Part shown: positions 8,482 through 44,700 of the stretch, piece by piece
Numbering within the stretch: the stretch's first letter is position 1
Layout of the letters: each line of letters starts with the position of its first letter
Source of the DNA: Schmidtea polychroa
Lineage: Eukaryota
DNA: 64,000 bases
Assembly: GCA_044892525.1 (NCBI GenBank)
Contig: CM097888.1
Location: forward strand, 26,474,001-26,538,000
Reading direction: 5' to 3'
Made by a program: the position numbers and the translations under genes
Notes under the pieces: model-generated
What the model was told of the DNA's origin: nothing
The model's input: only the letters and a program-made list of their open reading frames with translations
Databases searched by the model: none

Positions 8482-11400
8482 TCATATAAAACTGACAACA
8501 TTAGTTTTCAAAAAGTTTGTCTTTTTAGATTTTAGATTCAAATTATTATTTGACACTCTTTTTGTATGATTTGATGAATAACTATAAGGAATATTGGGAA
8601 GAACCCTTTGGAAATTAGGTTTTCTTTCTTTTCTTGTAGAGGAAATATCATTTCCCACTCTTTGATTCGTCTCATCTGTTTCTTCCTGAATAATTTCAAT
8701 AATTGTATTACTTTTGTATTTCTGATGTGAAAGATTTTCCAATTCTTTATCTTTAATGGTGACCACTGACTCCAGGTGATGAACTTTCTTTTTCAATTCA
8801 TTTATTATGTCCATAAATTCATTTCTTTCATTTGATTCTATTTTTATGTGTTTATATTTTTCCGGGACATTTTCCGGCGATAAAACACCAAAAATGAAAT
8901 TTTCTTGCATTTCTATCTGCTCATAAAGTTGACCAATTTTATTATTAATAGCAATTTCGTAATTTCCCATCACTGTTGTCAAATTTGCTGTTGGGTCATT
9001 GGTGGAATTTATTTGAAATCTTTGTTTTACTGATTGGATTTCGATTTTCAAATTTTCAAAAATCTTCATTTCTTCGACAAGGTTATGATACAAGTTGGTC
9101 ATAGTTTCAAATAAATTTTGAAAGATCTCCAACTGTTTATCTATGTCGAACTTTTTTACATGAGATTCTGATGATTCTCGAATTAAAAGAGAATGCGAAT
9201 CCGATGAATTCTGTAAAATGGTTCGGATCGTTGAAGACATTTTAGTAACCATATTTTTAAACAGATTGAGTGAGCGCTCTATTCTTTGAATTTCTTTGTC
9301 GTTGGCTGTATTAAATTTGGCAGCTATTACCAATTCCTCTTCCTGTTGTTGTTTTCGCTTTTTATGTTCCTCAATTAGTAAGTTAAGTTCCTCTTGCTTT
9401 TCTATCAATTTTGTTTCAATTGCGGTTAACTAAAAATATAAAAATTTTAAGAATCTCTTTTCTAAAATATTTAATTAAATTTTAAAATATTTTATTATAA
9501 AAACTATGATTAAATTTAATACGAAATAACACGGTTCACTAGACACTTCAACCGAATAGACTTATAAGAGGTAACCTTTTTTTGTTTAAACAGGAAATAT
9601 ATCTATAGTAAAACGGATGTCTTTTAAAAATGAATTGTTGGCAGTAGATAAAGAATTGCAGATAAAGAATTCATAAATTGGAACCTGAATAAGAAAGATT
9701 TTTGAATACAAATAAATTTTTATAGTTAACCGTTTTTCCTTTTTAGGTAATTTGAATTGTTATTAATTAAAGATGGTTATAAGTTTTTACATTCGCAAAA
9801 CATTCTAATTATCAAACGTTGACTGTTAATAAATGTAATAATAATAAACAGTTGTATAAATTTATGAATGGTTTGGGGCGTGACTTTGGATGGTCCTAAG
9901 AATTGGTGTCAGAGGGCAATAAATGTATCAACTTGTTAGGGTTAGGCTTGAAAGAGTTAAGATAATTTTAGAATTAAAATCAAAAGTAGTTATTAAATTT
10001 TTTAGATCATTAAAGTTAAAAATTATATATAATCATTATTTCTGGGTTGATATAATCGTGTAAATTTGGAGACATCCCAAATATCTTTATTTTGACAAGC
10101 TACATGGAGTTGCTGCTAATTGTTAGTATCAGCTTTCGTTTCTTTGCAATACCTTTTCATATTGCGTATATTTTACATTGCGTATTTTATATTGCGTATT
10201 TTGCAGCTGTTATTTGTTAAGTAAATTATTAAAAAGCATATTGTTACCATATTTGTTTAGTTATTAAATAATTTACACGCAACACCGTTTTATTTGCAAT
10301 ACCTTTTGGAATCAGGTATTTGTTTAGATAAAGAACGAATTTATATAGTATTAGTCGTATCCCCGTTATTCAAACCTAACACATTGTGTAGGGGTCCAGT
10401 TTGTTAAATTATGACGTTGTCATAGTTTCAGTTGTTTTGGACCCGAAAAATTTCCTTAAAATTTATTTTATCTTACTATTTTTAAAAAATAAAAATGAAA
10501 CTGGTCAAGAATAGTAAAGAAAATATTTAATGATTTTTAAAATAATCAAATAGTTAAAGATAAAATTATTCTTCAAATTTATATTTCAAATAAATATTTC
10601 CTGATCTATGCGTACCAACTGTAACATTCAACAAAAGGTAATTTCACGCTTAGTTGAGGTTCATGCACTGCACAAGCTTCCGATTTTGAAACTTGAACTA
10701 CAAAAGACGTATCTGCCTTATATTCTTTTCCATAAATATTCACAACGGGGCGGCCTAAAATCAAATTATTTATGAATGTGATAATGAAATGAAAATTGAA
10801 TTTACCCTGTGCATCGAGGGTCCCAAAAAATCTTGGATATCGTCCTGATTGAGAAGCCGATGTCAAAAGTGCCATCATGAGAAGTGCTGATAAAATCAAT
10901 AATTTCATGGTTGATTGATTGGTGAAATGAATCGATATTCGATCAATCGATTGATTTTGAATTTATATTGATTTTTATAATTGAATGTGAAAATCGATTG
11001 AAATGTGCAGTTAAAGTTCTTTTGTTATTTTGATGATATGAAAAAATATTCGAATATATATTTTAATAAGAATTATATAAGAATTTGAAACTAAATTTAA
11101 ATGATGTTTTGTTATATCAATAATTTAATATTATATGAAAAATGTCGGTGAGATGTATTTAAAATTTAATATTATAAAATTGCAATAATATATAATTATT
11201 TATATATCCTTGAATTATTGATATAACAAAACATCATTTAAATTTAGTTTCAAATTCTTATATAATTCTTATTAAAATATATATTCGAATATTTTTTCAT
11301 ATCATCGAAATAACAAAAGAACTTTAACTGCACATTTCAATCGATTTTCACATTCAATTACAAAAATCAATATAAATTCAAAATCAATCGATTGATCGAA

Positions 11401-14085
11401 TATCGATTCATTTCACCAATCAATCAACAATGAAATTATTGATTTTATCAGCACTTCTCATGATGGCACTTTTGACATCGGCTTCTCAATCAGGACGATA
11501 TCCAAGATTTTTTGGGACTCTCGATGCACAGGGTAAATTCAATTTTCATTTCATTATCACATTCATAAATAATTTGATTTTAGGCCGCCCCGTTGTGAAT
11601 ATTTATGGAAAAGAATATAAGGCTGATACGTCTTTTGTAGTTCAAGTATCAAAATCGGAAGCTTGTGCAGTGCATGAACCTCAACTAAGCGTGAAATTAC
11701 CTTTCGTTGAATGTTACAGTTGGTACGCATAGATCGGGAAATATTTATTTGAAATATAAATTTAAAAACAATTTTATTAGTGTTTGTTTTTGAATAAAAT
11801 AAAATTATAATTGTTACAAACAAATCATGGTTCAGTTAATCATTATATCCATCTCAGGATTATAAATCATACTTGAACCTTCTATTCGACAATTTCAACA
11901 TTCAATGTACACGTCAACCAATCATTCACTATCCGACTAGCGCATGACACTCCAATCGAACTAAACCTGTAATTTAAATGATATATGACATATTTATCTT
12001 CTTTTTTTATCAAAAATTAGTTCGTTGTGTCTGTTTTTTAGAATAATTTATTATTTTGATTACATGACATTAAAAAGAATTTAGAGTTTATTTAGAAAAA
12101 TATTTAATATCTATAATTAATAATAATCGTAATTTATTTTTAATTTTTTATATTTTAAAAATTGTTTTGATAATAATTTGTTTTCAATGCAGACTGTTTT
12201 CGTTATTTGCCATTTATCTTGATGTGTAAAAAAATTATTAAATTTTTTAACCGCCGTAGATTGGTTAAAAATCACTATTTAAAAAACGGATTTTAGTCTA
12301 AGTTGACCAAATATTTAGCTTGCAAAAATAACATTGGCCTTAATTAACTACATAAATTAACTACATACATAACATATAACAAATCTACATAGGTAAATAA
12401 CATTACTTTTTGTTCCAAGAATCTTTTTGGAACGTTTTTATTTTGGAATGCTAAGTTAATTTGATTGTAAATTTTAATTAATGATAATTATTCTTATTTG
12501 TTAACTACATGATTACTTTAAAAGAACCGAATATAGTAGAGTTCCAGAACTCAACATAATTAAGTAAGCAGAAAATGAAAATAATGCATGTAGTGCCTTA
12601 GCCTTACGTCTACATATTTAAATGTTTAATTTATTTAAATATAGATAGAATATAAAAACGTTTGTTTAAATAACGGAAAATAAAGAAATATTCAATATTC
12701 AAAATGCAGATCAAGAAGCAGAAGAAAAAAATTAAATCTTGTTATGAATAAAATATTAATTCTGGATTGTATCTTATTCACTAAAATGCGTTTCATATGA
12801 TTGAGCGATATGTGACAAAGATGATATTTCAAGACTTCCCCTTTATTAACTGTCACTATAATAAAAGCATTATGATATTATTTTGAAACATTAATCCGAA
12901 GTATGGCTTATGTGATGATGCTAAACTTAGAATAATGATATTTTAGATAAAGTATAAAGACACAGTGACAATGTGAGTATACAAGAATGGTTTTGCAATC
13001 ATTTTAAAAAGAAATATAATAATAAATTAATTCAACAGTTGCTAGTCAAATATGTATTAAATAAATTGTTAATAATGATTAATTAATTTTATCGTTATGT
13101 TAAATTATATTATGATGCAATATTTATTTTCGTTATAAAGGCAAATTGACACCATGATAATAACATTTATAATATATCTGATACAAGTTGCACCCAACCA
13201 TGTTGAATTTACTTATTTTAATTTCATTTAAAATTATTATTAGTCATCAGTGAACAGTAAACAAAGTGTAAAGTTAATAAAAGAATATTGTTCAAAATAC
13301 GGGATATTTCATGGTGCGGTAAAGTGAACCAATGTACAGGACGGTTTCGCAAAATTTTGGATGAATGGCCAGTTTAGGCTTTGCAGATTTTAAACATTAT
13401 TGCGTAATTATATGTTTAGTACAGATGTGTAACAATTATGAAACTTTTCTCAAATGATAAATGGAAAAATACAAAATTATTTAGTTTCACTAACTTGTAT
13501 TTTCAATTGATCCTTTTCAACTTCTTTGCTTTTTATTTCTCTCTGAAATTTCCACGATTGCTCAACTTGGCCTAGCCGAGCAACTGAAGTTTTTCTTTGA
13601 ATTTCTTTTGGTTGACTTAAAAGATTTTTAATATTTTCTTCTTTTATCTGTATCAGTATAATACATCATAACGAATTAATTAAATTACGATAATAATTCA
13701 TGTTGGATATAATGCAAAAAATAACTATTATAATTATAAAATAAATCTGAATAAAACCAATTAAAGTGAAAAATGTATAAATTCATCATGTTGTATGTAA
13801 ATAAATGAACGTTTACAAAATTGTTCCCGTGATCATTAGGGTATGTCAGTTTAATTAACATTTGATAAAGGGTGTGCCAAAAATTTGTGTGTAACTTTAA
13901 TTCAGCTACTAGGTTAGAAATTTAATGCTCATTATAAACTTTTAACAGGTTGTATTCATGACGCATTACTGCTGTAAATAAGTTTTTTAAAATATTCTGA
14001 ATATCACAAAATTCAGAATATATAAATTGGTGAATAAAATCTTACTATTTATTTGTTCATTTAGTTCTTGCTCAAATCCATTTAT
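8482..14085 (-). CDS. Unnamed coiled-coil protein, 3' part. Exons 14085-14046, 13971-13940, 13647-13495 and 9429-8482; 5' exons not found.
   Basis: Phases join cleanly to give INGFEQELNEQINTVMRHEYNLLKIKEENIKNLLSQPKEIQRKTSVARLGQVEQSWKFQREIKSKEVEKDQLKIQ|LTAIETKLIEKQEEL..., followed by a 948-nt terminal exon rich in E/K/Q heptads. The join across the 4065-nt intron is inferred from phase and composition. Confidence 0.65.
10606..10908 (-). CDS. Secreted microprotein, copy 1 (83 aa after removing the 51-nt intron 10805-10755)
   Basis: Signal-peptide-like MKLLILSALLMMALLTSA; canonical CAGG|GTAAAT...ATTTTAG|GC intron; four near-identical copies in the window. Confidence 0.85.
   Translation of the reverse strand: MKLLILSALLMMALLTSASQSGRYPRFFGTLDAQGKFNFHFIITFINNLILGRPVVNIYGKEYKADTSFVVQVSKSEACAVHEPQLSVKLPFVECYSWYA
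11335..11429 (+). promoter_or_regulatory. Conserved proximal promoter/5'UTR of the microprotein genes, with clustered ATCGAT/ATCAAT motifs
   Basis: The same block lies upstream of all four ATGs. It has three ATCGAT and three ATCAAT within about 95 bp in copy 2. Confidence 0.45.
11430..11732 (+). CDS. Secreted microprotein, copy 2 (intron 11533-11583)
   Basis: Same protein as copy 1, with 4 synonymous differences. Confidence 0.85.
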   Translation: MKLLILSALLMMALLTSASQSGRYPRFFGTLDAQGKFNFHFIITFINNLILGRPVVNIYGKEYKADTSFVVQVSKSEACAVHEPQLSVKLPFVECYSWYA

Positions 14086-14734
14086 CTAATAAAGTTTATG
14101 ATAAGAATAATGAAAAAAAGTAACTGTAAATTTAACGGAAACTAATGTTAAAATTAACTAGACGCGAGTCTTTTTTATTATTATTATTAGTCGTGGAACC
14201 CTTTTATCATATTTAAAACTTTATAGAACCCCCAAAAAATATTAAAAATGGAAAAACCAACAAAATGAACTTTTGTATGACTCAGTTTCTTAACAATAAT
14301 TAAAAAAATTAATATTATTGTATATTCTTTATGTGAGGCGTTTTTGTAATTTGTATTAAAATAATGGTATGATGTTGTGCATGTTTGATTGTATGTTGCA
14401 ATCCTTACTTATACATTAATTATTATTTTTAGAAACTCCTCAAACAAATTAATGTTATAATTTGTTTTAATAATATTTGTAATAAATAATAATAAACGTG
14501 TTAGTATAATTTTTTTTTATGTATTCGATTTATACCCGTAGCTCTGTGGCTAATACTTTATAAAACTGGATACACTTCCATAAAGTTATCAAAATGCTTT
14601 ATCAGAAGAATAAATAATAATTATTTTTATTAATGATAATTTCTATTATATAATATAAATTTTTGTGTGACGAATGCACAATTTCCGTTTTTGGCACTTT
14701 TTTATAAATTATATTTTTATATAAACTTTTTTTA

Positions 14735-15040
14735 GTGGCTTAATGCAGTGAAAATCTTGTCTCGCATAAATAGGTAGCTGGAAATGATAATAATTTACGA
14801 CTTGCACATTTTGGAATTTTTGAATATTCTTCAAATAATTGGCCGTTGGAATTAATTTTTTGAAACCCGCATTAGGAAATTCGACTGATTTTTCTTGTAC
14901 TTGAGTGAATGAATTTCGAACTCAATTATATATTTTTTCATTTTTCATATCGGTTTGAATTTCTAGCTCGAGGGGTTGTTCAGTTTTATCAAAAAGTCAT
15001 GAAGTGTTGGAAAGCAGTCCAAATTGTTTTGATCAATTTT
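14735..15040 (-). mobile_element. Decayed hAT (Buster/Charlie-type) transposase C-terminus
   Basis: NNLDCFPTLHDFL and EEYSKIPKCASRKLLSFPATYLCETRFS, which matches the dimerisation-domain motif LLPFPSTYLCE-x-GFS. Confidence 0.7.
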
Positions 15041-15199
15041 AACTTACGAGACAATGATAATATTTTATCTTTCACATTAAATATGTTTAAGTTATTTTTT
15101 ATAAGTAAGAGTCTCTTTAAAAACTTGAAGGCATAGAGGGTGGTGTAAACTAACTGGATGAATTCATCTCGTAGGTCTGGATATTTGATTGAAATTGTG

Positions 15200-15640
15200 T
15201 AACTTATTTAGAGAACTGGAGTACAAATTTAAATGGATTAAAACTTGTTGAATGGGTAAATTTGAGAAAACAAGTTTTACGGAATAAAGTTTTGTGTTCA
15301 TTTCAGCCTTTAAAGCTTACTTTGGTTCGACATTAAATGAGGACCAATTATTCGATGAAGTTAGTCTGTTACAAGTAGAACTTCTAGGAGATAAAATTTC
15401 CGATTGCAACCCTGAAAATATTGGTATTGAAGATCGATAGGTTGAATTGTTCAAATTGATTCTAGAGTCTGGGTCAAGTCAAAATAAATTTTAAATTTAT
15501 GACATTTTATGTGAGTTTATTTTTTGTCTTCCTGAGAGAAGGGCGTCGATTCAGTGTATGTTCTCAAATATTATTAACTGGAGTTCAGAAAAATCGCAGA
15601 TAAAGCTGTGATGTAAGTTAACACATACTTTAATGAGACT
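15200..15640 (+). mobile_element. Decayed hAT-like transposase C-terminus (second family)
   Basis: NEDQLFDEV...LCEFIFCLPERRASIQCMFSNIINWSSEKSQ resembles EF-x-L-x-LPG-x-NA-x-VERVFS...W-x-x-EK; contains stop codons. Confidence 0.5.
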
Positions 15641-16660
15641 TGCATCGAAATGTTCGTTTCTAAAGGCCAAACCGGCAAATTTTGAAACCAATCCTAAGTT
15701 TCCTAAAGTACGATTGGCATAAACGTGACCTAAGTAATGGAGTTGTAAGGACGTTGAAATAAAATTATAAGTCTTTTAATATTAATTTATAAATAACTTT
15801 AGTATAGTGATTTTTGTTGCAGTTTTTTATCAAAAAATAATTAGTTTTGTTTTACTTTTTGATGATATACTACATTTAGTTAATCGATTTGTCTTTATAA
15901 ACATACTACTAATAAAAGTAGTGGATTGTCGACTTTTTGTTACCCTTTGCTTTTGTACTTTTTATCGAAGAATAAAAATGGTCACTTTAATATTAAAGGG
16001 TTTTTGTGACACTTTTTCACGAATGTTTTAAATGCCTTTTTACGCTAATAGATTTACAAATCCCGTCAATTCAACGAATTTCAAATTTTTCAAAAGGAAA
16101 TATTTTATTAAATCAATTCTGTAATAATAAAAATATTTTCAATTAATTTTGCTAACAAAACCTCATTTTAATGAATTAGTCAGTATGATGAAGTTCAGAA
16201 CAATAGCTATGAAATTTTTACCGTAAATGAAGTGCTAATATTATATCCTTCAGAAACCCTTAAAAGATTTTTACCATAATACTTATTAAAAAAAATCCAC
16301 TTTTTTTCATTTAAAATTCAAATAAATTGCTGTAAAATTAAAAAGTTTTTTTTGATTTTTGATTTTAAATTTATTGTTATATAAAATTATAACATAATAT
16401 AGCATAATAATTATGATAAAATTTTTCCATGCCAAATTTAAAACATAATACTTTGTACTAACTTTATTATTTATGTATTTGAAAAGGAGGTCTTTCTCTT
16501 TTTGAATTAACGTTTTCTTCAAAGTTGGTATCTCTTCCCAAATATCATTAAAATTTAATGAAACGTCAGACGACACTAAAATGACACCCAAAATAAAATA
16601 TATGAACATTATTATAAGAACTTTTTTCAAATTTCACCACTGATTTCTTTTCCATTGTAT

Positions 16661-16722
16661 TTATTAAAAAGCTTAAAAACTATATATATATACTGATTCA
16701 TAGTCTTCAAGCTTTTTAATAA
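16661..16722. repeat. Short palindromic dispersed element, degenerate copy
   Basis: TTATTAAAAAGCTT...AAGCTTTTTAATAA; related to 24007-24076 and 32293-32321. Confidence 0.65.
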
Positions 16723-18180: not shown

Positions 18181-18402
18181 CTCTTAAATGCATGATTTTT
18201 TGTATTGCATTATCACTGACCACGTGCTATCACAATTATTATTGACAAAAAACATAGATTTTATTTTTATTTTCAATTGAATCCATAGACAGACTGTTTA
18301 TCTTATTGCCAGACTAAAAAAATGTATCGCTGTCATTAATCATAAATAATTATATTTAAATATTTGGTACGATGAAAATTTCCATCACAATGCATTTAAG
18401 GA
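18181..18402. mobile_element. piggyBac-type MITE, 222 bp
   Basis: TTAA on both sides (18177-18180 and 18403-18406); 13-bp TIRs CTCTTAAATGCAT and revcomp TCCTTAAATGCAT. Confidence 0.55.
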
Positions 18403-19013
18403 TTAAAATATTATAGTCTTAATCAGTATAAAATAGTAAAAATAAGTATAAGAAAATAATTGTCAAAATTGAATGTAAAAGAGACAAAGCAAAAAGATTC
18501 AAATAATAAAGTTCGAGAAAAATAAGTTGAAACGAGAAAAAATTAATAAATCGGAAATGTTTAACTATATATTTGAGGTGGTTCCCTGTCACTACGTCTA
18601 GTACTATTAGTTGAGTTGTATTGATCTAATCCTAGAGATTGTAAACTGTAATAATAAAAAAAGTTATTTGTGTTGAATTTGTTTTAATTGATCAAGAGCA
18701 CGTGGAGTCAGATTAGCAGTTAAATCCTGAAGAAATATGTAAAATAAATCAACACTAATATGAAAGAAGAAATAAATGTTTTAGAATAAAAATGTAAGCT
18801 AAATTTCAGTTTAAATGATATTTTTCAGTCAATGCTTTAAAACTACATTTTCACAAATATTTTCTCATTTCATTTAGATTACAAAAGAATAAAACAGTTT
18901 CTTGAATAAATGCACATTTTAATGGATTTTCACATTCAATTACAAAAATCAATATATAAATTCAAAATCAATCGATTGATTGAATATCGATTCATTTCAC
19001 CAATCAATCAACA

Positions 19014-19316
19014 ATGAAATTATTGATTTTATCAGCACTTCTCATGATGACACTTTTGACATCGGCTTCTCAATCAGGACGATATCCAAGATTTTTTGGG
19101 ACCCTCGATGCACAGGGTAAATTCAATTTTAATGTCATTATCACATTCATAAATAATTTGATTTTAGGTCGCCCCGTTGTGAATATTTATGGAAAAGAAT
19201 ATAAGGCAGATACGTCTTTTGTAGTTCAAGTATCAAAATCAGAAGCTTGTGCAGTGCATGAACCTCAACTAAGCGTGAAATTACCTTTTGTTGAATGTTA
19301 TAGTTGGTACGCATAG
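19014..19316 (+). CDS. Secreted microprotein, copy 3 (intron 19117-19167; A13T in the signal peptide)
   Basis: Mature sequence identical to copies 1 and 2. Confidence 0.85.
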   Translation: MKLLILSALLMMTLLTSASQSGRYPRFFGTLDAQGKFNFNVIITFINNLILGRPVVNIYGKEYKADTSFVVQVSKSEACAVHEPQLSVKLPFVECYSWYA

Positions 19317-19376
19317 ATCGGGAAATATTTATTTGAAATATAAGTTCTATTTTTGATTCTCATTATTTACTTTTTC

Positions 19377-19436
<60 letters not shown>
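19377..19436. repeat. (AAT)n microsatellite, about 20 units
   Basis: Read directly from the sequence. Confidence 0.98.
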
Positions 19437-19437
<1 letters not shown>

Positions 19438-19450
19438 GCAATAATGATAC

Positions 19451-22400
19451 GTTACTTGTTCCATTCAAAAGTTCTGCAATTATTGGATAACCAGATAAAA
19501 CCAAAATTTCACAAAAATCTTCGAAATATTTGGATTTCTTCATTTGCAAAGACTCAATAATGCAGTCAATCTTTATTTCATTTGTGCTTGCATTCTGATA
19601 AAAAATTTCAAATAAGATGTATCCAATTGCTTACATATTAATTCTAACTAATCGAACAAATATACAGGAACCCAAAATTATGAAAGTTGACTAAATCATG
19701 TTTCTTTCCTTTCGGAATATCCATTTGGATCAACTGTATTATATCCCCCATAATATATCAACGGTAATATCTCTCCAGCCCCCAGTATAAAAAAATTAGT
19801 GTCATATTTTTGTTAGGGTTGGGTCTGGGCTCGCTTGGGGCGTGCACAGACGGTCTAATAACAAAAATACCAATTGTATAGAATAATCACTATAAATAGA
19901 TTAATAATATAAATTGTAGTTTAAATAATATGAATAGTAATAAATAAATACAAATAATTATAAATAGTAATAAATAAATATTAATGAATAAATATAGTAA
20001 TTTCAGTTATTAAATTAGATTAGAATTTAATATAAAAGAACACATTTTATCAACAAAGGGACATTAAAAATTATAGCAACAGCTTGCAAGAGAGATCAAT
20101 TGAGTAGATCAGCATATGTGAGAAATAGCTGGAAAACAAATTAAATCTCGTAGAGTAACATTTACGGAAAACTAATTACGAAATGAGTAATTAGCGTTTT
20201 ACCGTTACTTTACCTAACCAGAGAAACCACATTAAAAGCCATTTTTCCAAAACAAAAATCAGTTATCGATTCTACCGATTAAACTAATTGTAAAATTTTT
20301 GAGCAAGGCTTAAAATATCATTGTTTGGGTAATCTCAGCAACAGTTTTCTAGGGAAACTGCATTGATAGTTTGTAACATTTAAATATCAGATAGTAGGTA
20401 TCTAGGGGACGTTAATACCACCACTTCTGGGTAGTAATCGATCGCACTAAACTTCGGGCATCCCTCGTCTTTTACCTTCCATTGTTGAGCGGTGCTGTTG
20501 ATCAATTAGGATCCTGCATTCGCCGTCTTTGAAATACTTGAGGACGGTTTGTATAACCGATATCATTGCTTCTGTATATCGCGACAACTTTGGGTAACCT
20601 GTTTTATATTTTTAAAACTGTTTCACATAAATCATATTTTGTATTTATTTATTTTATAAATAAAGTTTATTATCGAAAGCGAGTTGTGTTCCTATTTATG
20701 ACATTAAAAGATCTTTGGAGTCAGATCAATAGAGCGTGTGTTAGTCGTATACCCACTTACGAGCCTAACTATTTGCACCAATATGACTCGATATTCTCTA
20801 TGTGTACATTGTTAAATGTATAAACGAATATTTCTGAATGGTTTATGGTCTTATATTTGAAACCGTTTGCAGAAATCTGTCTATAGATAGGCCACTCGTC
20901 AGAATAAATTGTTGTGCTTGGTAAACAAATCTTTTTGATTATCGGAATAAGTGTTTACGCTTTCCGATCCTCTAGAACTTGCATAAAACCTATGACTGGA
21001 CTTTAACTAGTCTCTACTATTCCAAAGTCGAAAACCTCTTCTTCTTTAACCTTACCCTTATGTCCTTTGGGATAATGACTACGCAGACTTTCATCAACCT
21101 AACAAATTTTATTTTGATCACTAAGGTGTCAAGGATTTAATATAAAAACATGACGCATACATATCTTAAAAAGTGTCTTATTAATGTCTTTTTCTAACTA
21201 TCACAGTTTTTTCACTCAGAAAGGAAGATCTTCGGGTTATCATGATATTTGACTGGATAAGCCAGTAGTAAATAACATGAATAAAACTTTTTAAAGGTAT
21301 CTGTGTATTTTGTTATACATCTTCGGATCTTATAAAGCTTCTTGTTTTGTATTTAGTGAGTAGAATACTATGAGCTTAGCATATGTGATTATGTAATTTT
21401 TAAGTTTTACATAATATACATACTTACGTAATCATATACGTAATTATACAATAATAATATTTTGTTTTGATTAAGTGATCACCATTTTTATTTTTTTGTT
21501 CTANNNNNNNNNNNNNNNNNNNNNNNNNNNNNNNNNNNNNNNNNNNNNNNNNNNNNNNNNNNNNNNNNNNNNNNNNNNNNNNNNNNNNNNNNNNNNNNNN
21601 NNNNNNNNNNNNNNNNNNNNNNNNNNNNNNNNNNNNNNNNNNNNNNNNNNNNNNNNNNNNNNNNNNNNNNNNNNTAATATTATACAAAAACCTTATGAAG
21701 ACAAGACGAGACAAGATTAAGAATGTGTTCACTTATAACAAAACACTACTCACACATACACTTTTTTACACAATGCTACAAGCGAATGGATATAGTGGTA
21801 TCTCGTAGGCTCAATGATTAAAATTGTGTATTTACTTTTTCACTTATATTTATTTTTGCAGAGGTCTCCCAAAAGGTTGGATTGCAGACATCCAACACAA
21901 TATCCGGCATATAGAATTCTATTTAAATTAAGAGATAAAGAAGGTGCCCCAATCATCATAATATATTAAAAAATACAAATAATTTTTCACTGTTTAATAA
22001 TAACTGTCTAGCAAATGTTCTTTTTACACCACAGCTTTTTCAAAGAATACTTAAAAAGATATACTGAAATTCTACACTAAATAGAAAGCAAAATATTGAT
22101 CTATAGTCTGAGAGAAAATGAAGATAAAGGAATTTGAACATGAAAATATATCTAACGTGAAAACAATAAAATATTTTACAGGATTTTATGTTGATCTAAG
22201 AAATTAGGAATAAATATACTAAGAAATGACATGTTGGAAATAAAGTTGAAAAAATCCGATATTATAAAAGTTAATTTAAATGTCTGAAGTACTGAAATAT
22301 TTCACAGCTCCTTATGAAGATGGGTTCAAATTTACTTGCTAGTGCAAATAAACATTTGTCTCACAAATGACATCCAATTTTCTATGGAGTGAATGTTGCT

Positions 22401-26643: not shown

Positions 26644-27390
26644 ATGCAAATAAATGTACACATAGTTGCAAATATTCTGATAATCCAAGTATCCTTCGTA
26701 TTTTCGCCAAACGAAAATTTCAATGAAATTAATTTTCATTCCATTGCCAAAAATCCTAAAGGAAATGTTTGCACTTATTTTGGTACGTAAATTGAATATG
26801 GATAAATTACATTATGAACAATTAGCTTCTAATAGATATTCCGAACCTGAAAGCAGTTTAATAAATTGCACATGGTTCCGAAAAGACGCTTGCTGCAAGC
26901 GGACAGAAGTAACTTCTGTTTTTACGGGAATGTTTGCATTATATAAAGCCACAAATAAATGCAAATACATGATGAATTATCTTATGTGTTATTTTTGTAG
27001 TCCATATCAATCTCAATGGTATCGAAACAAGTATTTTTGGTATAACTTTACCGATAAATATTAAACAGTAGTTTCTAAGTAAAACTGTTGTATGTCTATC
27101 ATTCTGTCAGAACTTGTTTGATAATTGCAAAACTGCTATGTATAAAGGAATCAAGTTGGGTAAAGAATTATTCTGTAAGTATTCTTTAAGCAACATTTTT
27201 AATTTTAGGCAGTGTATATAATTCTGGAAAAAAGTTTTGTGAGGCTCAAAATTTTCAGACTCTCAATTCCGACATGCATTGTTATGGTTACGATCCAACT
27301 GTTTTTGGGTCCAATTCCCTAAATGGAATCAACTGTTTATTAATTATTATATCAATCGTTTTTAATTATTTCGATATACTTATTTATTAA
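26644..27390 (+). CDS. Folate-receptor-family protein of about 201 aa, probably GPI-anchored. Exons 26644-26782, 26826-27030, 27080-27159 and 27209-27390.
   Basis: GT-AG introns of 43, 49 and 49 nt with consistent phases. Cys pattern NCTWFRKDACC...KCKYMMNYLMCYFCSP...VCLSFCQNLFDNC...FCEAQ...C; hydrophobic N-terminus and C-terminal tail after FGSNS. Confidence 0.8.
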
Positions 27391-34342: not shown

Positions 34343-34435
34343 ATTCAATTCAAATTCAAATTTTAAGTAAATCTCAAATTCAAATTCAAATTCAAATTTT
34401 GAGTAACTCGAATTCAAATTCAAATTCAAATTTTC
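34343..34435. repeat. Interrupted (TTCAAA)n simple repeat
   Basis: Read directly from the sequence; could be a LINE 3' tail on the minus strand (unproven). Confidence 0.8.
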
Positions 34436-34890: not shown

Positions 34891-35049
34891 ATATATAAAT
34901 TCTCCTTACTTACGTCATAGGTTAGCTGATTGAGTTTGGCCATCAACGATGACATGTGTATGATTGTCAAAGGTTTTAAAAAGTTTATGTTAACCTAGGT
35001 ATCTCAGCTTTAAACCAGAATCCAAGGTGATGCCGATAAAAAATGAGTT

Positions 35050-36330: not shown

Positions 36331-36366
36331 TTCTAAAGTCTTTCCAAACGAATTCCATCTATCAAA

Positions 36367-37110
36367 ATGAACGATAAAACAGGGTTGAATATTGCATTAG
36401 GGCGTTTACGGAACAGGGCTTTTGGAGATGGATTGGACATTACGGAAGAACAAAGAAGAAGAGAGGCATACGAAGAAAAGTATGAAGAAGTCATGACAGA
36501 ATTCGAGCAGCTGAAGAATAATGCCCTGGAGTTAGAACGAGAGAAAGAAGTAAAAGAAATTGAAGCAGATCTGAAACGATTAGAAGCGGAGTTTAGCAGA
36601 ATCGGTGATCTGTTCTTCACGCAGAAGGAAGAAAGTTTTAAAGCGGAATCCCTGAAGGTCACAGAAAGATTATTTAGGAGTAAAGATCATAATGAAAAAC
36701 CGAAATTAATAGTGGGATTAAAGCCCTTACAACTTCCGATGTTTAATGGAGGGGTAAATGAATACGGAGTGGCGAGCAATAGTAAAAGCCTTCATTGAAG
36801 ATACGGACAAGCCTTGTGAAACAAAGTACTTATATCTAAGGCAATATTTGGAAGGCAAGGCTCTAAGACTAATCTTAAACATAGGATATGGAGAGGGGGC
36901 GTTTGAAACCGCAGTGAAGCGGTTAGACCAGCGATATGGCGGTGTCGAAAGAAATTATTCAATTATGATGGAGTCCTTGCAGCGCTTTTACCCTATCAGG
37001 AACAATGAGCTGAAGGATCTGGATAGGTTTTCCGAATTGCTTCAAAAACTTAATATTGAGATTGAAGGTCTTGAATAAAAAGGAGGAGTTAAAAGATTAC
37101 CTATTACAGA
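36367..37110 (+). mobile_element. BEL/Pao gag fragment (DUF1759-like), frameshifted
   Basis: LKPLQLPMFNG...EW...F...KYLYLRQYLEGKA...AFETAVKRLDQRYG...LDRFSELL; frameshift near 36765 and a stop at 37076-37078. Confidence 0.85.
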
Positions 37111-37450
37111 GATTACAAAAATCCCAATTTATCCAAACACTCTTATTTCTGCATCAAAGGATAAATCTTTGATTATTTGGGATGGATTTGAAAGTGATGT
37201 TGTTATGTCAAGTGATGGTCAATTTGCATTGTCTGGATCATGGGACGGAACTTTAATGTTATGGAATTTATCTGAAGGAAGACATTTATACACTTTAGAA
37301 AGATGTGATATTATCAGTGAACATCTTCTCACCAAACATATATTGGCTATGTGCTGCAACTGGCTCATCTATCAAGATTTGGGATTTGGAAAATAAAGTT
37401 TCAGTTGGAGATTTGACTTATGAACAAATGATTAATCAAAATAAAAAATG
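37103..37450 (+). pseudogene. RACK1: RACK1 (GNB2L1) pseudogene with internal deletions
   Basis: [45 protein letters not shown]...DII, and (after a frameshift) [26 protein letters not shown]3-WD5 are missing. Confidence 0.9.
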
Positions 37451-38003
37451 GATTGTTATGCTTCTTTTGGACTTGATACAATAACCTTTTGGAGTCTGAT
37501 TTATTTTTTGTTTACTTGTGTTATATCTGAGGTCAGATTTTATGTAAATGTGGATTCTAATATCAATAAATGATAATTTTATGATTGTAGGAGACGTATG
37601 TGACCCATTGGACATTTTAGACAGGTCATATAAAATACAATTATCTTGAAAACCGCATATAATTCATGGCTGGGAGACAAAGGTTATTCCTAGTTAAAAC
37701 ACATAAACCCTAACTGTCCCAACACACTCAAATTTATTATCGGTAAATCTGGTAGGGTCAGACAAATTTCTTGAAATGAATATACCAACAATTCCTCAAC
37801 CTTTCGACTAAAATGAGAAACATACAAAATACTTGGAAAATTCAATTCAATTCAAATTCAAGTAACAATTCTTGGAAAATTCGTAGAAAATAATTTTCGG
37901 GAAAATTCTTGAACTCAGAAAGGTAATAAACTTGGGACTTGGGAATCAACGAAAATATTCTTGGTATTTTTGCGAAACATGTAAAATAAAAACTAGTTGG
38001 GAT

Positions 38004-39100
38004 TTACAACAGGTGAGATAAATAATCATTATACATTTGCAAATCATTCTTTTCTTGTATAATTTCAACCAAATCATTTCCACGAGGAAGTGTGGTTGGT
38101 AAATCAGACAAAATACATCTTATGTCATCATAATTTTCCAAAGAAGATTTATGTGATTCTTGTAAGAACATGTCATAATTTTTAAAATTTAAATTATAAA
38201 TAATATCCATTCTTTTTTCAGAATTTGGTTTCAAGCAATCTAAATAACCTTGATGAGATATTTTATTGCTTACGCATTTTTTTATTCCCTTTTTTCTATT
38301 CTCTTCGCTTTTAAAACATTTGAGAGAATATTGTTTTGCTCTAATAATAGGAAAATCCATTATGGGATTATCGGGTTTTTCTGATTTAAAAGTAAAAAGA
38401 TCACCACTCGTATTTATTAATGAGATTAATTTTTGAGTTGATTCAATTTTTTCATCAATATTTATAAATTCTGGAATTCTATCAATTTTAAAAGCATGGA
38501 ATCAGTATCCATTGTGTGCATTGAAATTCTATTTTTAAAATGAGGTAAAAGAACATTGTAAAATGTTTCATACATTTGAAGTTATGATAATTCAAGAATT
38601 GTAAATCCCAAGCTTATTGATCTGTTATATTTTTTCCCCTATTTTCCTATTTCTACAGCAATAAAATCATCAGAAAATTTTACTGCATCTTTAAATGTTG
38701 GTCTTGATAACATTTTCCAAGTTTTCCTTTATCATTTTTTGTAAACAAGAGTATATTAACATATTTATCTATTCTTTTCTTTGTTTTTCCAAAGACTGTA
38801 TTATTTAATAATTTATACAACATAGCTTTAAATTCATCCTAGTTAGTTTTTGCTTCTGCTCCTTTTTCTATATTACCAATAATATAATCTCTCATAACAG
38901 GTCCTTGTTTGAAGAAAATTATATTATAAAGTTTATCAATTGTCATTCACTGTTGAACATAAAATTTTAACAATCTATAATGAACAAGATAATTCTTTTT
39001 ATTATTTTGATCACAAACTAATTTAGTTACTTTTCCAGGTTGTTTTTTTCTTTGCCATTCCATCAATTCTTCAGGTTGTATTATCTTTTTTATTTTAAAT
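38004..39100 (-). pseudogene. Protein-primed family B DNA polymerase, C-terminal fragment
   Basis: RPTFKDAVKFSDDFIAVE, MDTDS, IRAKQYS, KKGIKKCV, YDDIRCILSD...TLPRG. Confidence 0.85.
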
Positions 39101-39679
39101 TTCTGTTTTTTGAGTATTTATTTAACAAAAAAAAAACTAAAATTTTATATTAAAATAAAAAAACATAAATATAGTTCTATTATAATAATAATAATCTTAT
39201 AAAGTCTTAAAGATTTTTTTAATCATTCTATAAAATTATTATTTAGTTTGATCGGTAAAATATCTTGAAGTCTTTCTTCACTCAGGTGACAACGAAGGAA
39301 CGAAAACACATATTTTAACACAGAAAAAAATTTTTTATATTACTCGTATTTTTCATATAAAAAAAACTGAAGAATAATGAAACTAAATATCAAGAGGATA
39401 ATGATAAACTTACTTACCCAAGAATATTATTATTTATAAAGACAAACAGTAAATAATTAAAAATTCTAAAACCAATTAAACAAAATATAAATCAAAATAT
39501 TCAAATTTTCAAATTATAATCAGCTGTTATTTGACACATCAACACAAACTTAGATCCCAACATGCAAACTTTTCATTTTCCCGGCAAGCAATATTTTGAT
39601 ACCTAAGTAACGAAACTTACACTGATTTTCCGAAACTGACACTACATTCGTTTTCGAATAGGAATTTAAAAAAATATGC

Positions 39680-39812
39680 AGTGGAGCGGAACTGCACCTC
39701 ACCGCTCCGCTCCTTATAAATTTTTTAGTCACTGCTCTGCTATTTATTCCAAGCAAATTTTCCACTTCGGAGCTGCACAGGGCTCCGGGTTCCGCTTTGC
39801 TCCGAATCCCTG
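39680..39812 (-). mobile_element. Probable hAT-type MITE end with GCTCC repeats, inserted in the Polinton
   Basis: Minus-strand end CAGGGATTCGGAGC with repeated GGAGC/GCTCC; partner end not found. Confidence 0.35.
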
Positions 39813-39824
39813 GTTCAAATTCAT

Positions 39825-40500
39825 CTCAGAATTACTTTTCTAGTGTTGTCCAAAGCAACATTATTATATCTTCTATTCCAATGACTTTTTAAAATATGAA
39901 ACTTGTATTTTTCCATTATTGTTGAAAATAAATCATGATAAATATTATCTCGATCACGTTTATTCAATTCAAAAAATATATAAAAATTTGAATTCCCTCG
40001 AATAGATCTTCTCAGTAAATCAAAATAATCACAACAATTTCTATGTCTTTATCTTGTAAAATACGATTCCATTATTTGTTAATTTCTATCATTCACACAA
40101 TCATCAAAAACTATTAAATTCTTTCTATTTTTGTTTAAATTCTCACAAGGTATTACATCTGAAAATTTATTACTCATTGTTACTTGAATTATTCCATCAT
40201 TGTTAATTTCTCTCTGTCCACTAGTTTCACACAAGTCTGAAATCTTTATATCTTCTGGAATTTGCTCTTGGTTTTTAAAAATATTTAATATTCTTTGTTT
40301 TAATAAATTATTTTTAAATTGCAGTTCTGATGAAATATTGTTTTACTAAAAATTATTAAATTATTATAATCCAAAAATTTAGGGTACCACAACATTTTCC
40401 AAAGTAAAACATTTTTGCCACAACCAGAATCACCAACGATCAACATTCTGAAGGAACTCAGTAATATTTCGTTGTGGCTAAATTTTGTTAAATTATTATT
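39825..40500 (-). pseudogene. Polinton A32-like packaging ATPase pseudogene
   Basis: Walker A RMLIVGDSGCGK, Walker B NLIVFDDC, then YFTR*RHRNC and SIRGNSNFF; contains stops and frameshifts. Confidence 0.85.
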
Positions 40501-40679
40501 CCAAACGTAAAATTTCTTCCATCAGCTATTTTTTGAATTTAAAAATAAACCTTGTCCATTTGCTTTTATTTCAACTTCTTGTAGTTTTTTTAATTCTTTT
40601 AAATATTTCTTGCCTGTTTTATCATTGGATATTGTTTTTAAATATTTTGTAATAGTTTTTAATTGATCCTTGTTAAATA

Positions 40680-40895
40680 TTAAACCTTTTTCTTTGTATA
40701 GCTCGAGAAATATTCCTTTGCCTTGTTCCTATTTATTTCCGCAGGTTTTTCTGCAGGTTTTCCACGTTCATCAATTAATTTAGCTTCCTTAATATTTTTA
40801 ACCATAGTAGCTATTCCACCAGCTGCACCAGATGCTGCTGTTATTCCACTAAAAATTAATGTTATTAATCCAACCAAAGGAAGAATTGCTCCTTC
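40680..40895 (-). CDS. Polinton small Gly/Ala-rich virion core-like protein fragment
   Basis: EGAILPLVGLITLIFSGITAASGAAGGIATMVK resembles the GG-x-LPL...AG...GG-x-A motif I recall from Maverick/adintovirus core proteins. Confidence 0.5.
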   Translation of the reverse strand, partial: EGAILPLVGLITLIFSGITAASGAAGGIATMVKNIKEAKLIDERGKPAEKPAEINRNKAKEYFSSYTKKKV

Positions 40896-40999
40896 ATGTT
40901 TTAATTAGTTTATTTTTTCTTTGTAAATGCATGCCTTTTTTGCAATATAGGTTATTGTTTTCGGTTTCTCTTTTTCTAATATTGATCTTATTTTCTTTA

Positions 41000-41225
41000 A
41001 AAATTCTTTATCTGTCATTTTCTATTTTCTAAATTGGTCGTTGAATTTGAATTTAAAAAGAAAGCAATAATGGGAGGAGGATTAGTTGAAGATTCCGAAA
41101 GCAATAAAGAATTAAAACCAAATTTCCATAAAGCATTAAACACCAAAGTTTTCGGTGTTCTAGCTCCAGGTCCTAAATAATCCTTTATATTTAGCCCATG
41201 GACATTCTGGTAATTTGGAACTTGT
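41000..41225 (-). pseudogene. Parvovirus VP1u-type PLA2-like remnant
   Basis: KLPECPWAKYKG, then (frameshift) YLGPG, later LENRK and DKEFL; the HD catalytic part is not seen. Confidence 0.45.
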
Positions 41226-41747
41226 CTATTGTATATTCAAACCACTTTTTATTTTATGAGGATTAGTTCTTTCATGTTTCGCTTTATGAGATTTGCAAGG
41301 TTTGCAAAAATACATTTTTATACCACGAATATTTATGTTGGTTCCCAAGTCGGAGAATTATTTTCTATGAATTTTCCCGAGAATTATTTTCTAAAAATTT
41401 TATTTCTTTTTCCTCGAGAAGTCAATGATGACTCAAGTAATGAGGATATAAATCATATGACCTCAGGGTCCATATGGATTATATCCTCATTACTATTCTG
41501 ATTGAGAATTAAAATATAAACTGAATAATTAAACAAAATCAAAATTTTCAAAAATGAAAATTTAAATACGAGAATGGAAAAACTAATTACTTTTATTCTT
41601 ACTCCAATCCTTATTTTTATACAATAAATAATCTAGAAATTGCATTGTAAATAATTATCCATTCGAAAATTCTCAAAGGAATTTGATAATTAATATAGAT
41701 ATGGTACTTATTGAAACCAAAATTTCTTTTAACAACATAATATTTTT

Positions 41748-44700
41748 NNNNNNNNNNNNNNNNNNNNNNNNNNNNNNNNNNNNNNNNNNNNNNNNNNNNN
41801 NNNNNNNNNNNNNNNNNNNNNNNNNNNNNNNNNNNNNNNNNNNNNNNNNNNNNNNNNNNNNNNNNNNNNNNNNNNNNNNNNNNNNNNNNNNNNNNNNNNN
41901 NNNNNNNNNNNNNNNNNNNNNNNNNNNNNNNNNNNNNNNNATCATTAAATATATATATTTGTAACATCAATCTACTATAAAAATTTGGATTTAATGATAT
42001 GAAATAAGTGTTCATTTCGTAACAATTTTTATTTATTTAATTTCATTTAGTTCTGATTTTTATTGTAATTTCTTGTTTTAAAATGAATTTTCCAAAAGTT
42101 GTTAAGATAAAATAAAATAATTTTAATTCTTAGATCATCAATTTGACATTCTTAAAATGTATTACAATATTTTCTCATATCATCGAAATAACAAAAGAAC
42201 TTTAACTGCACATTTCAATCGATTTTCACATTCAATTACAAAAATCAATATAAATTCAAAATCAATCGATTGATTGAATATCGATTTATTTCACCAATCA
42301 ATCAACAATGAAATTATTGATTTTATCAGCACTTCTCATGATGACACTTTTGACATCGGCTTCTCAATCAGGACGATATCCAAGATTTTTTGGGACCCTC
42401 GATGCACAGGGTAAATTCAATTTTAATGTCATTATCACATTCATAAATAATTTGATTTTAGGCCGCCCCGTTGTGAATATTTATGGAAAAGAATATAAGG
42501 CTGATACGTCTTTTGTAGTTCAAGTATCAAAATCGGAAGCTTGTGCAGTGCATGAACCTCAACTAAGCGTGAAATTACCTTTTGTTGAATGTTACAGTTG
42601 GTACGCATAGATCGGGAAATATTTATTTGAAATATAAATTTATAAAATTTCATATTGGTTATTGTTTATTAATTATTAATAATTTAGTTTGTGGCTATAG
42701 ATCAAAATTAAATAATATTTAAAACTGCATTCTATGAAAATTTTAATCAATATTTATTATAAAATAATTAATAATTAAAGTGCATGAAATTGCTAAATTA
42801 GGCAATGAAATGTTTTATAATCAGGAAATAAAAATGATAAAGTTTACTGAGATTCAGTGTAAATAAACTGAAAGAAATTAAGTCAAATTGACATTCAACT
42901 GTGAAAAACATATATTATAGAAACAATCAAAACCTCATAAAAATCCGCATTTAGTTATAAAAGTCCTCTAATCACTAACCAATTTTATCTGAAAAAAACG
43001 CCATATTCTTTTAATATTCTGGCAGAATTTTATTTCCTTATTTACTTTATTTTTTGCTGGTAAAAGCAATCGCAATAAAATGCAAATAATTATTCCTATA
43101 GGTAATTTATTATCCATCACCAAACTCGTGCAATATGCAGGGAAATATTGGTGATCTCTCCCAGATATTGCTGCTGGAAATTGTGAACATTAATTTTATT
43201 TGGGAGAAAATTATCAGCTTTAACTGTATTATTTGCATATTTCATTAAGCAATTTTTCGATTCTACTGTTCATTAATTTTTAGCTGAATCAATAAATAGA
43301 ATAAAATGAAANNNNNNNNNNNNNNNNNNNNNNNNNNNNNNNNNNNNNNNNNNNNNNNNNNNNNNNNNNNNNNNNNNNNNNNNNNNNNNNNNNNNNNNNN
43401 NNNNNNNNNNNNNNNNNNNNNNNNNNNNNNNNNNNNNNNNNNNNNNNNNNNNNNNNNNNNNNNNNNNNNNNNNNNNNNNNNNNNNNNNNNNNNNNNNNNN
43501 NNNNNNNNNNNNNNNNNNNNNNNNNNNNNNNNNNNNNNNNNNNNNNNNNNNNNNNNNNNNNNNNNNNNNNNNNNNNNNNNNNNNNNNNNNNNNNNNNNNN
43601 NNNNNNNNNNNNNNNNNNNNNNNNNNNNNNNNNNNNNNNNNNNNNNNNNNNNNNNNNNNNNNNNNGAAGCAATTCTCATCATAAACAGACAGCCAAAGAT
43701 CAACACTAAAGAAGTCAATGAAATCATGAATTTGATCTTTTGTCATTGACCTTGAGAATAACTGACAATAAATAAAGAAATTTAAAAATATATATAATAA
43801 ATTAAAAAGTAATATTTAAAATAATATAGAAAATTTTAAAAAATAGGATTTAAAAATCAGAATTGACACATCTATTGAAATATTTAAATAGCGTATAAAA
43901 GTAGTTATTGGAGGCTTTATTTAGAATATTTTGAAATATTTTATTAGGCTTCTAGAAGCTAATTATAAAAGCTGTATAAAAAAATTTAAAGATTTTTAGT
44001 TTGTGTCATTTTGGAATTTTAAATTTATTTTATTTTATTTTTAATTTTAATTTTCAGTAAAATTTTAAAAGTTTTTAATAAAAAAATTCATAAAACGAAA
44101 GTATATATTATATTTACAACCAATGAGAATTAAGAGAAAGGAAATAAAAGAAAGATTGAAAGGTATTTTTGGGAAGAACATTACTAAATTCCAGGAGATT
44201 GACAGGGACTATCTTATAGTCGAAACATTTTTCATTATTTGCAGCAAAAGGCGTAATTATCACTTGATTGCATTATTTTGATTTTTATGAACTAAAATTA
44301 TTTTTTATTGTTTATAATAAGATGATTAAAGATTTCCATTTAACAAAACAATTTAAAATTGTAACAAATAGAATATTAAAAATTGTTTTTATATATTTTG
44401 TGCTTTAGATAATGTTCAGAAAAAAAACAACATTTGAATAAATTTTTATGTTTTATTATTCAATGTAATTAAAAAGATTTATTCAACCATTTAAAATTTT
44501 ACATGTAAAGATCAATAAAATTTTATTAGAAAAGGAAAAACTAGCGGAAAAGAAAAATAACCATTTGAAAACAAAATTTATTTTAAGGATATTAGTTAAT
44601 TTTGATATGTGTTTATCCCAAAACTCATTTCATTCTGATATGTCAATTAAATATTTTTTCAATAAAACTTAATAAAAGTGCTTTTTAAAACAAATAAATT

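Follow-up and report, generated by a model that had tools for sequence, protein, structure and literature searches.

A short two-exon gene in four copies

The window, by which we mean the whole 64,000-nucleotide (nt) stretch of the Schmidtea polychroa genome analyzed here (assembly GCA_044892525.1, contig CM097888.1, positions 26,474,001 to 26,538,000; GC content 27%), carries four copies of a compact gene that is predicted to encode a small secreted protein. An original prediction, made from the sequence alone, had placed these copies at 10908-10606 (-), 11430-11732 (+), 19014-19316 (+), and 42308-42610 (+), and they were found at exactly these positions (copies c1, c2, c3, and c4, respectively). 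Two diagnostic probes of 26 and 29 nt gave four matches each in the window, against none expected by chance. The alignment of the four copies had 94% identity per column over 500 nt, and pairwise identity was 96-99% across about 450 bp. As set out below, they belong to a subfamily of near-identical genes that we assign to a divergent branch of a larger planarian family.

Every copy consists of a 103-nt exon, a 51-nt GT-AG intron of phase 1, and a 149-nt exon. In c2, exon 1 (11430-11532) encodes the signal peptide plus 16 amino acids (aa) and is followed by the intron (11533-11583) and exon 2 (11584-11732); an automatic gene model returned the same exons. Copy c1 is read from the reverse strand (exon 1, 10908-10806; intron, 10805-10755; exon 2, 10754-10606 including the stop codon), and its translation is identical to that of c2. 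Copies c3 (exon 1, 19014-19116; intron, 19117-19167; exon 2, 19168-19316) and c4 (exon 1, 42308-42410; intron, 42411-42461; exon 2, 42462-42610) encode Thr13 in the signal peptide. The intron of c2 begins with GTAAAT, ends with TTTTAG, and is in frame and free of stop codons. At the predicted splice junction, ...GCACAGG is joined to GCCGCCCC, the intron splitting the codon G|GC that precedes RPVV.

The spliced product that had been foreseen for these genes is, as read from the sequence, an 83-aa precursor with one pair of cysteines, Cys62 and Cys78. Its proposed secretion agreed with the presence of a canonical signal peptide composed of MK, 13 hydrophobic residues, and TSA|SQ. Cleavage is predicted after Ala18, at a site placed by the -3/-1 rule only, which would leave a mature protein of 65 aa and 7.3 kDa. 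This mature protein is near neutral, with a charge of +0.5 and an isoelectric point (pI) of 7.7.

The repeated unit and its flanking blocks

The copies are embedded in a repeated unit of about 440-500 bp, whose limits are about -141 relative to the ATG and about +35 past the stop codon; the flanks are unrelated. In c2 the conserved upstream block occupies 11289-11429 (+), approximately -141 to -1, and contains TATAAA at -59 and ATCGAT at -90, -43, and -28. The equivalent blocks of c1, c3, and c4 are located at 10909-11049 (-), 18907-19013 (+), and 42149-42307 (+), respectively. Nine variable sites were counted in the proximal 101 nt upstream of the ATG, a conservation equal to or better than that of the intron. 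TATAAA stands at -59 in the subfamily; most relatives have it between -37 and -55. The upstream block is a putative core promoter with a short 5' untranslated region (UTR). The ATCGAT palindromes of c2 lie at 11340, 11387, and 11402 and recur at matching places in c1, c3, and c4, with only two present in c3; 11 of the 26 ATCGAT sites of the window fall in the four promoter blocks of about 140 nt. None was found upstream of about 20 canonical members of the family introduced below. ATCGAT is a candidate regulatory element specific to the subfamily.

Downstream of the stop codon, c2 has a conserved block at 11733-11768 (+) with an AATATA-type poly(A) signal, at the end of which homology between copies stops. 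Its equivalents are 10575-10605 (-), 19317-19350 (+), and 42611-42647 (+). The first 27-35 nt past the stop are conserved in the manner of a UTR, and the block is a putative 3' UTR. Homology between the copies ended 27-141 nt past the stop codon, and no shared block was seen further downstream within 1.5 kb of the units. Only c3 and the copies L005 and L006 have the extended 3' homology, which reaches as far as 141 nt; this suggests that duplication took place in two or more rounds that ended at different points. A (TAA)n microsatellite directly follows the 3' block of c3 (19350-19440) and that of L005.

Copies c1 and c2 are arranged head to head as an inverted duplication (10575-11768), whose arms of about 550 bp are about 98% identical and enclose a unique center of about 87 bp near 11171. 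The edges of homology are ragged and differ from one pair of copies to the next, a pattern in keeping with ancient duplications at the DNA level but not with a mobile element. A mobile-element fragment or other non-coding repeat with an accidental open frame might nevertheless be suspected, as the unit is short (about 450 bp) and dispersed, the homology ends fairly sharply, and remains of hAT and retroelements occur in the window. Besides the ragged edges, however, neither terminal repeats nor target duplications were found, and the unit holds no Pfam transposon domain. Its variation follows codon position, about 30 homologous genes have the same exon-intron plan, and cDNA-type proteins of this kind are present in the databases. 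Such an accidental origin is exceedingly improbable.

Seven runs of N interrupt the window, and none of them overlaps a gene unit. The run at 21504-21674 begins 2.2 kb past c3. The run at 41748-41940 ends 209 nt upstream of the 5' edge of the c4 unit (42149), the DNA between being AT-rich and non-coding. Copy c4 thereby lies on a 1,371-nt island flanked by N runs, its flanks and its mix of variants being its own. Only the spacing between c3 and c4 depends on continuity across N runs. Six of the runs, 169-354 nt in length, follow each other every 1.6-2.2 kb or so between 41748 and 51678 (starting at 41748, 43312, 45514, 47705, 49388, and 51481), and the sequences between them are not repeats of one another. 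Runs of such regularity are odd for a HiFi assembly and may represent deliberate masking.

Seven intact copies on chromosome 4

A search of the whole-genome DNA (781,270,316 bases in 1,012 contigs, with pieces of chromosome size) revealed seven intact copies in a 443-kb region of chromosome 4 (26.269-26.712 Mb). One fragment and one pseudogene were found in addition. The count of four given by the original prediction had thus been too low, and the multi-copy dosage that it proposed is borne out to the extent that several intact copies are present. All seven retain the ATG, both splice sites, the reading frame, the TATA box, and the promoter block. The fragment (L009; 134 nt, C4:26709703-26709836 (-), 95% identical) includes the intron together with a portion of exon 1 and the beginning of exon 2; it is inverted relative to the seventh intact copy and situated 2.1 kb upstream of it. 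The pseudogene (L008), at 66.35 Mb, is 85% identical and begins with GTG; its exon 2 has diverged by 18% and carries a 1-nt deletion and a 5-nt insertion, both of which shift the frame.

The S. polychroa assembly schPol2 was built from HiFi and Hi-C data with haplotigs purged, and 11% of it is unplaced (Ivankovic et al. 2024, PMC11410931). This unplaced portion and the position of c4 on a 1.4-kb island between N runs might be taken to mean that only one or two loci exist, the remaining copies being artifacts of assembly or haplotype duplication. Every copy, however, has unique flanks, and c1 and c2 stand in inverted orientation, 0.5 kb from each other, on uninterrupted sequence. The copies differ from each other at 1-4% of sites, in mosaic patterns. 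Moreover, short-read DNA contigs from a separate data set carry distinct variant sets, those of the c2, L006, and pseudogene types being found side by side. The unique flanks and the side-by-side variant sets argue against duplication by assembly, which we regard as highly improbable.

Selection on the coding sequence

Purifying selection on the product, likewise proposed from the sequence alone, was confirmed by the genome-wide copy count with dN/dS; the ratio (omega) was about 0.06 for the seven copies. Twelve codons vary among them, ten synonymously and two non-synonymously (P = 1.6e-5), and per-site variation was 0.175 at synonymous versus 0.010 at non-synonymous sites. The two residue changes are Ala/Thr13, in the signal peptide, and Val/Ile38, in one copy. 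For the four window copies, the earlier tally of seven synonymous sites and one non-synonymous site was exact. In c2 coordinates, the synonymous sites are 11519, 11585, 11624, 11648, 11657, 11705, and 11717, and the non-synonymous site, that of Ala/Thr13, is 11466.

Over the seven copies, 6 of the 51 intron sites are variable. When the intron is read as codons, each of the four variable "codons" in it would alter the encoded residue, whereas only 2 of the 12 variable exon codons do so; the intron thus evolves like silent sequence. The FHF/FNV changes that had been attributed to the intron do lie within it, at 11547 and 11550. The 51-nt intron itself is supported by this silent-like variation, by relatives that share its position and phase, and by database proteins that confirm the junction (see below). 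Taken together, the silent-like intron and the synonymous excess in the exons point to a real coding gene under strong purifying selection.

In a four-gamete test, 13 of 28 informative site pairs showed all four gametes, indicating that the copies exchange sequence by gene conversion. The similarity of the copies could then be a matter of recency and conversion, the copies themselves being young silent duplicates or relics; a pseudogene and a fragment do exist in the subfamily, and no run containing the locus is recorded as RNA. Yet recency and conversion alone cannot yield a 10:2 excess of synonymous changes or an omega of 0.06. The decay seen in L008 looks different from the seven copies with their intact ATG, splice sites, frame, TATA box, and promoter, and exon 2 is selectively covered in one sequencing run (X1, described below). 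That the copies are silent relics is therefore very unlikely. Recent pairs of canonical family members had omega values of 0.3-0.65, which is much looser than in the seven-copy subfamily.

Membership in a larger planarian family

The original prediction had recognized no family for the product. This orphan view is now replaced, as the seven copies form a divergent, truncated branch of about 37 loci for small secreted proteins. Searching the genome at the protein level with the exon-2 peptide gave three weak additional matches, two of which begin with G-(R/E)-PVV at the acceptor and share the Cys positions. A profile made from the first relatives detected 36 loci in the genome, and a 22-sequence profile detected 37. 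The latter are distributed over all four chromosomes and cluster at 64-73 Mb of chromosome 4 and at 6.0 and 145.2 Mb of chromosome 2. About 20 paralogue models have a signal-peptide exon ending in x-G-x-G-(F/Y)-x-x-x, a phase-1 intron of 43-62 nt, and a 48-aa exon. The intron splits a Gly codon just before x-P-x-V, and exon 1 encodes the signal peptide plus about 12 mature residues; the seven-copy subfamily has both features.

In most of these members, referred to here as canonical, the apparent stop after C-x-x proved to be a GT(A/G)AGT phase-2 donor, followed by a 44-50-nt intron and a third exon of 16-24 aa with the consensus P-S-P...D-G-K..Y.S.C. Exon 2 carries the pattern C-x2-C...C, and exon 3 supplies the fourth Cys. 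Canonical precursors comprise 92-101 aa, and the mature proteins have 8-9 kDa, four Cys, and pI values of 4.3-9.7. Three database proteins reproduce the splice junctions, namely P0008, which is the 98-aa S. mediterranea protein "X1.D.A5.1" (AHD24756.1 / V9XTG6_SCHMD), and P0007 and P0009, which are unnamed UniParc/MetaClust entries. The phase-1 junction was confirmed by P0008 and P0009. A literature search found no paper or function behind X1.D.A5.1, AHD24756, or V9XTG6.

A profile restricted to canonical members scored the subfamily exon-2 peptide with 27.7 bits (E = 8e-4 at Z = 1e7), compared with 8.9 bits for the best of 2,000 shuffles. This score and the shared intron position settle the homology. 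The invariant residues are V, I, A, Cys27, and Cys43 (numbered within exon 2). The family of about 37 loci is undescribed until now, one member being in GenBank without a function.

Two canonical gene pairs on chromosome 2 (L018 and L022-L024; 145.23-145.28 Mb), about 41 kb apart, look like a segmental duplication. L018 (C2:145237604-145240753) has an in-frame TAA after the signal peptide in exon 1 and is apparently defective; the intact twin, L022, corresponds to the database protein P0009.

Divergence of the seven-copy branch from canonical members

With X1.D.A5.1, P0007, and P0009 the subfamily shares the signal peptide, the G-x-G-(F/Y) segment, the phase-1 junction before G-x-P/Q-x-V, and a 48-aa all-beta exon-2 domain in which V, I, A, Cys, and P-x-(F/Y)-x-Cys are conserved. 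Whereas proteins of the X1.D.A5.1 type have the C-x2-C pair and a third exon with the fourth Cys, at a length of about 95-100 aa, the subfamily has two Cys and two exons. The second Cys of the C-x2-C pair, which canonical members carry in strand 4, falls in a three-residue gap (ACA---VHE versus C-x-K-C). The phase-2 second intron and the Cys-bearing third exon are absent, and no exon-3-like peptide was found within 1.5 kb downstream of the subfamily units. Instead, the frame runs past a GT in the phase of the canonical donor (TTG|GTACGC) to a TAG 8 nt on, which gives the tail SWYA. Because the second Cys and the third exon are missing, we file the subfamily as a truncated variant branch and not as a canonical member. 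The joint absence of Cys2 and Cys4, with Cys1 and Cys3 present, suggests that the canonical pairs are Cys1-Cys3 and Cys2-Cys4.

Exon-2 identity between the subfamily and canonical members is only 22-40%, and the branch is very long, with its own SWYA tail and a private promoter containing three ATCGAT elements. In a midpoint-rooted, poorly resolved tree, the stem of the subfamily measured about 3 substitutions per site and was placed within an unresolved group of canonical lineages.

Predicted fold and similarity searches

The hidden Markov model and structure searches recommended with the original prediction were carried out and resulted in a confident all-beta model with weak structural neighbors only and no Pfam or PDB family match. 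Using AlphaFold2 with the family alignment, the exon-2 domain of the subfamily was modeled with a predicted local distance difference test score (pLDDT) of 92. The model has five strands (residues 3-6, 9-12, 17-22, 25-30, and 40-45) in a 2+3 arrangement, and Cys27 and Cys43 lie in register on the last two strands. As judged from this model, Cys62 and Cys78 of the precursor probably form one disulfide. The model covers exon 2 alone, and the packing of residues 19-34 was inferred from the canonical model. The latter, a full model of P0008, had a pLDDT of 83 (79-95 over residues 21-98) and was all beta, with agreement of all five models; the mature segment encoded by exon 1 forms the first strand.

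At the sequence level, the read-through open reading frame matched nothing in Pfam, in an index of 5.8 billion proteins, or in the ESM Atlas. Six phmmer matches to it, in proteins of 727-1990 aa (3-8 stretches), centered on query residues 13-74, which represent the hydrophobic signal-peptide and intron-encoded part, and were judged compositional. The family profile had no match in Pfam or among PDB sequences. No significant Pfam match was obtained for any of the 22 members, the sole chance match being TilS-like at E 0.16, and an Rfam scan of the window detected no RNA family.

Foldseek searches of the PDB gave nothing at E<=0.001 for either model. The top matches of an exhaustive structural aligner were fibronectin type I (FnI), tPA finger, vWC, beta-microseminoprotein, and the complement inhibitor CirpT1 of ticks, with Z values of 3.0-4.6, and according to VIA guidance a Z under 8 may reflect a common arrangement. 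In the AlphaFold DB, the exon-2 domain matched VWFC/SVWC/chordin-type entries at Foldseek E values of 0.2-1.3 (VWFC, 0.57-1.1). The full P0008 model matched four small unnamed proteins with probability 1.0 and E values of 0.02-0.09. These proteins (A0A4E0RWZ1, A0A4S2LKT2, G7Y7D8, and A0A095C0P3; about 90-136 aa) have accessions in ranges that we take to belong to trematode (liver-fluke/blood-fluke) proteomes; if they are truly of trematode origin, the fold would be flatworm-wide. No paper on the four accessions turned up in the literature searched. A shape search of the Atlas returned bacterial PAS-like sensors only, with template modeling scores (TM) <0.5, and these were rejected as a generic beta arrangement.

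Traces of expression

Run X1, a 2016 data set under the same species label and guessed to be RNA, contained 0.73 of the words sampled from exon 2 and the 3' UTR and only 0.19 of the words over the whole 451-nt unit. From a DNA sample, at least about 0.8 of the whole-unit words would be expected, as was the case for runs X15-X17, whose coverage of the locus is the fullest. The exon-limited coverage in X1 is what a transcript would give. In guessed-RNA runs under a second species label, from about 15 studies, the same four to five words were found each time. These words would fit an expressed, well-conserved orthologue in a sister species.

Interpretation

The best explanation of the observed gene anatomy, copy number, selection pattern, and family membership is a two-exon, TATA-driven gene for a secreted beta mini-protein, which belongs to a truncated branch of the family, was amplified to seven copies, and was then conserved; we put the probability of this reading at about 0.75. 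Each copy would be a compact gene transcribed from its TATA promoter into a two-exon message, and the 83-aa product would enter the secretory pathway. The exported, mature form would be a 65-aa all-beta mini-protein with two Cys facing each other on adjacent strands, presumably joined in a disulfide. The branch would have lost Cys2 as well as exon 3, which supplies Cys4, the frame now reading past the old donor to a stop codon. A long burst of change, recorded in the stem of about 3 substitutions per site, would have been followed by local copying to seven genes within 443 kb, one inverted pair among them. Afterwards, the protein would have been kept near-invariant by purifying selection, with gene conversion between the copies. 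High dosage may have been the reason for the amplification. Our guess is that the protein is an abundant extracellular product of secretory or epidermal cells and serves as a stable binding or defense module in mucus or secretions. The roles put forward with the original prediction (adhesive, toxin, pheromone, or effector) are guesses as well.

Several points speak against this explanation. That run X1 is RNA is a guess. Runs X15-X17 are DNA, as evident from a Nextera adaptor tail and from their coverage of intron, promoter, and flanks, and they contain no splice joints; no read or contig with the spliced junction or a poly(A) site was found. Signal-peptide cleavage and the disulfide are predictions only. 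That Cys2 and exon 3 were lost, as opposed to ancestrally absent, is deduced from the midpoint-rooted tree and the vestigial donor and is not proven. The predicted fold has no significant known relative. In addition, the intron continues the reading frame without a stop in each of the seven copies, making an unspliced 100-aa isoform possible, and TTG|GTACGC, of the canonical phase-2 donor class, survives 8 nt before the stop.

The last two points would suit a transcript of another form, in which the intron is retained (giving 100 aa with a hydrophobic insert) or the GT near the stop is spliced to copy-specific sequence. Run X1 lacked about 4 of the 15 words sampled from exon 2 and the 3' UTR, which fits a transcript that ends or is spliced near the stop. 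Against retention, the variation of the intron is unconstrained, all four variable "codons" being residue-changing, and about 20 relatives require splicing at this place, as their introns hold stops or shift the frame. Against the use of the donor, the 27-35 nt after the stop are UTR-like with nothing conserved beyond, and copy-specific C termini would conflict with the invariant mature sequence. A transcript other than the two-exon form is thus unlikely, and the secreted product of a two-exon gene is retained as the preferred explanation.

A further step would be to regard the family as representing a small, disulfide-bonded all-beta fold of flatworms that is new to description, and the seven-copy branch as a neofunctionalized, high-dosage secreted effector peculiar to the S. 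polychroa lineage, acting, for instance, in defense, adhesion, or conspecific signaling in mucus. We offer this extension tentatively and rate it as possible but rather unlikely.

Planarian genomes encode many lineage-restricted secreted proteins, and the roles of these proteins in mucus, epidermis, defense, and reproduction are almost unexplored. Here, an apparent four-copy orphan has turned into a defined family of about 37 loci with a three-exon plan, fixed intron phases, and a confident predicted fold. The pattern of the branch would be a clean natural case of truncation followed by neofunctionalization and dosage amplification. Because the seven copies are near-identical, one RNA interference trigger or one probe addresses all of them, which makes function directly testable. 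The value of these results is that of a resource for flatworm biology; they resolve no long-standing question and do not constitute a categorically new system.

Other features of the window

On the reverse strand, 59151-61037 (-) holds a 628-aa frame with a Spin-doc-type zinc finger, DUF4371, and a hAT C-terminal dimerization domain, which is a hAT-type transposase or a domesticated relative. A frame at 36758-37078 (+) matches DUF1759, a retroelement Gag-like domain (E 1e-7), and represents a retroelement remnant. Two exon-size frames belong to neighboring host genes: that at 4226-4633 (-) matches CCDC149 (E 4e-15), and that at 26723-27064 (+) matches the folate-receptor family (E 4e-11).

Comparison with known systems

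FnI, the tPA finger, vWC, beta-microseminoprotein (MSMB), and CirpT1 resemble the predicted domain in being small disulfide-containing beta modules, and they were its best structural neighbors in two independent searches. Modules of the FnI/vWC/MSMB type are extracellular and protein-binding, comprise about 45-80 residues, and consist of two- and three-stranded antiparallel sheets. The difference lies in the number and spacing of the cysteines. FnI modules have 4 Cys (C...C-x-C...C), VWC domains have 10, and SVWC domains have 8, whereas two are present in the subfamily and four in its relatives (C-x2-C...C...C), with other spacing and no Pfam match. The modeled likeness to FnI, VWC, MSMB, and CirpT1 is a weak lead and does not amount to membership.

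The PROG proteins of planarians average 179 aa and contain coiled-coil as well as internal repeats, and PROG-2-5, of 16.8 kDa, is packed in epidermal secretory vesicles (Zhu et al. 2015, PMC4507787; Cheng et al. 2017, bioRxiv 10.1101/179986). Like the family described here, they are lineage-restricted, locally duplicated signal-peptide proteins without an assigned function, and the likeness is one of functional analogy. The present family differs in being small (8-9 kDa, or 7.3 kDa in the subfamily), all beta, and Cys-stabilized, and no sequence relation to PROG proteins was found. Membership in the PROG family was rejected, as an 83-aa all-beta precursor stands against about 180 aa with coiled-coil and repeats.

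Two classes of secreted peptides were also considered. A prohormone or neuropeptide precursor was rejected because the mature sequence has no dibasic site (KR, RR, KK, or RK), FFG being followed by TLD. A cationic antimicrobial peptide was rejected on account of the charge of only +0.5 and the pI of 7.7; unlike cationic amphipathic peptides, the subfamily product is predicted to be a near-neutral folded beta domain. Clusters of invertebrate antimicrobial-peptide genes consist of short genes in tandem or inverted order, each with a signal peptide and one short intron, that specify an identical mature product. In this array layout and in the invariance of the product, the seven-copy subfamily resembles such clusters, and both features fit the dosage reading.

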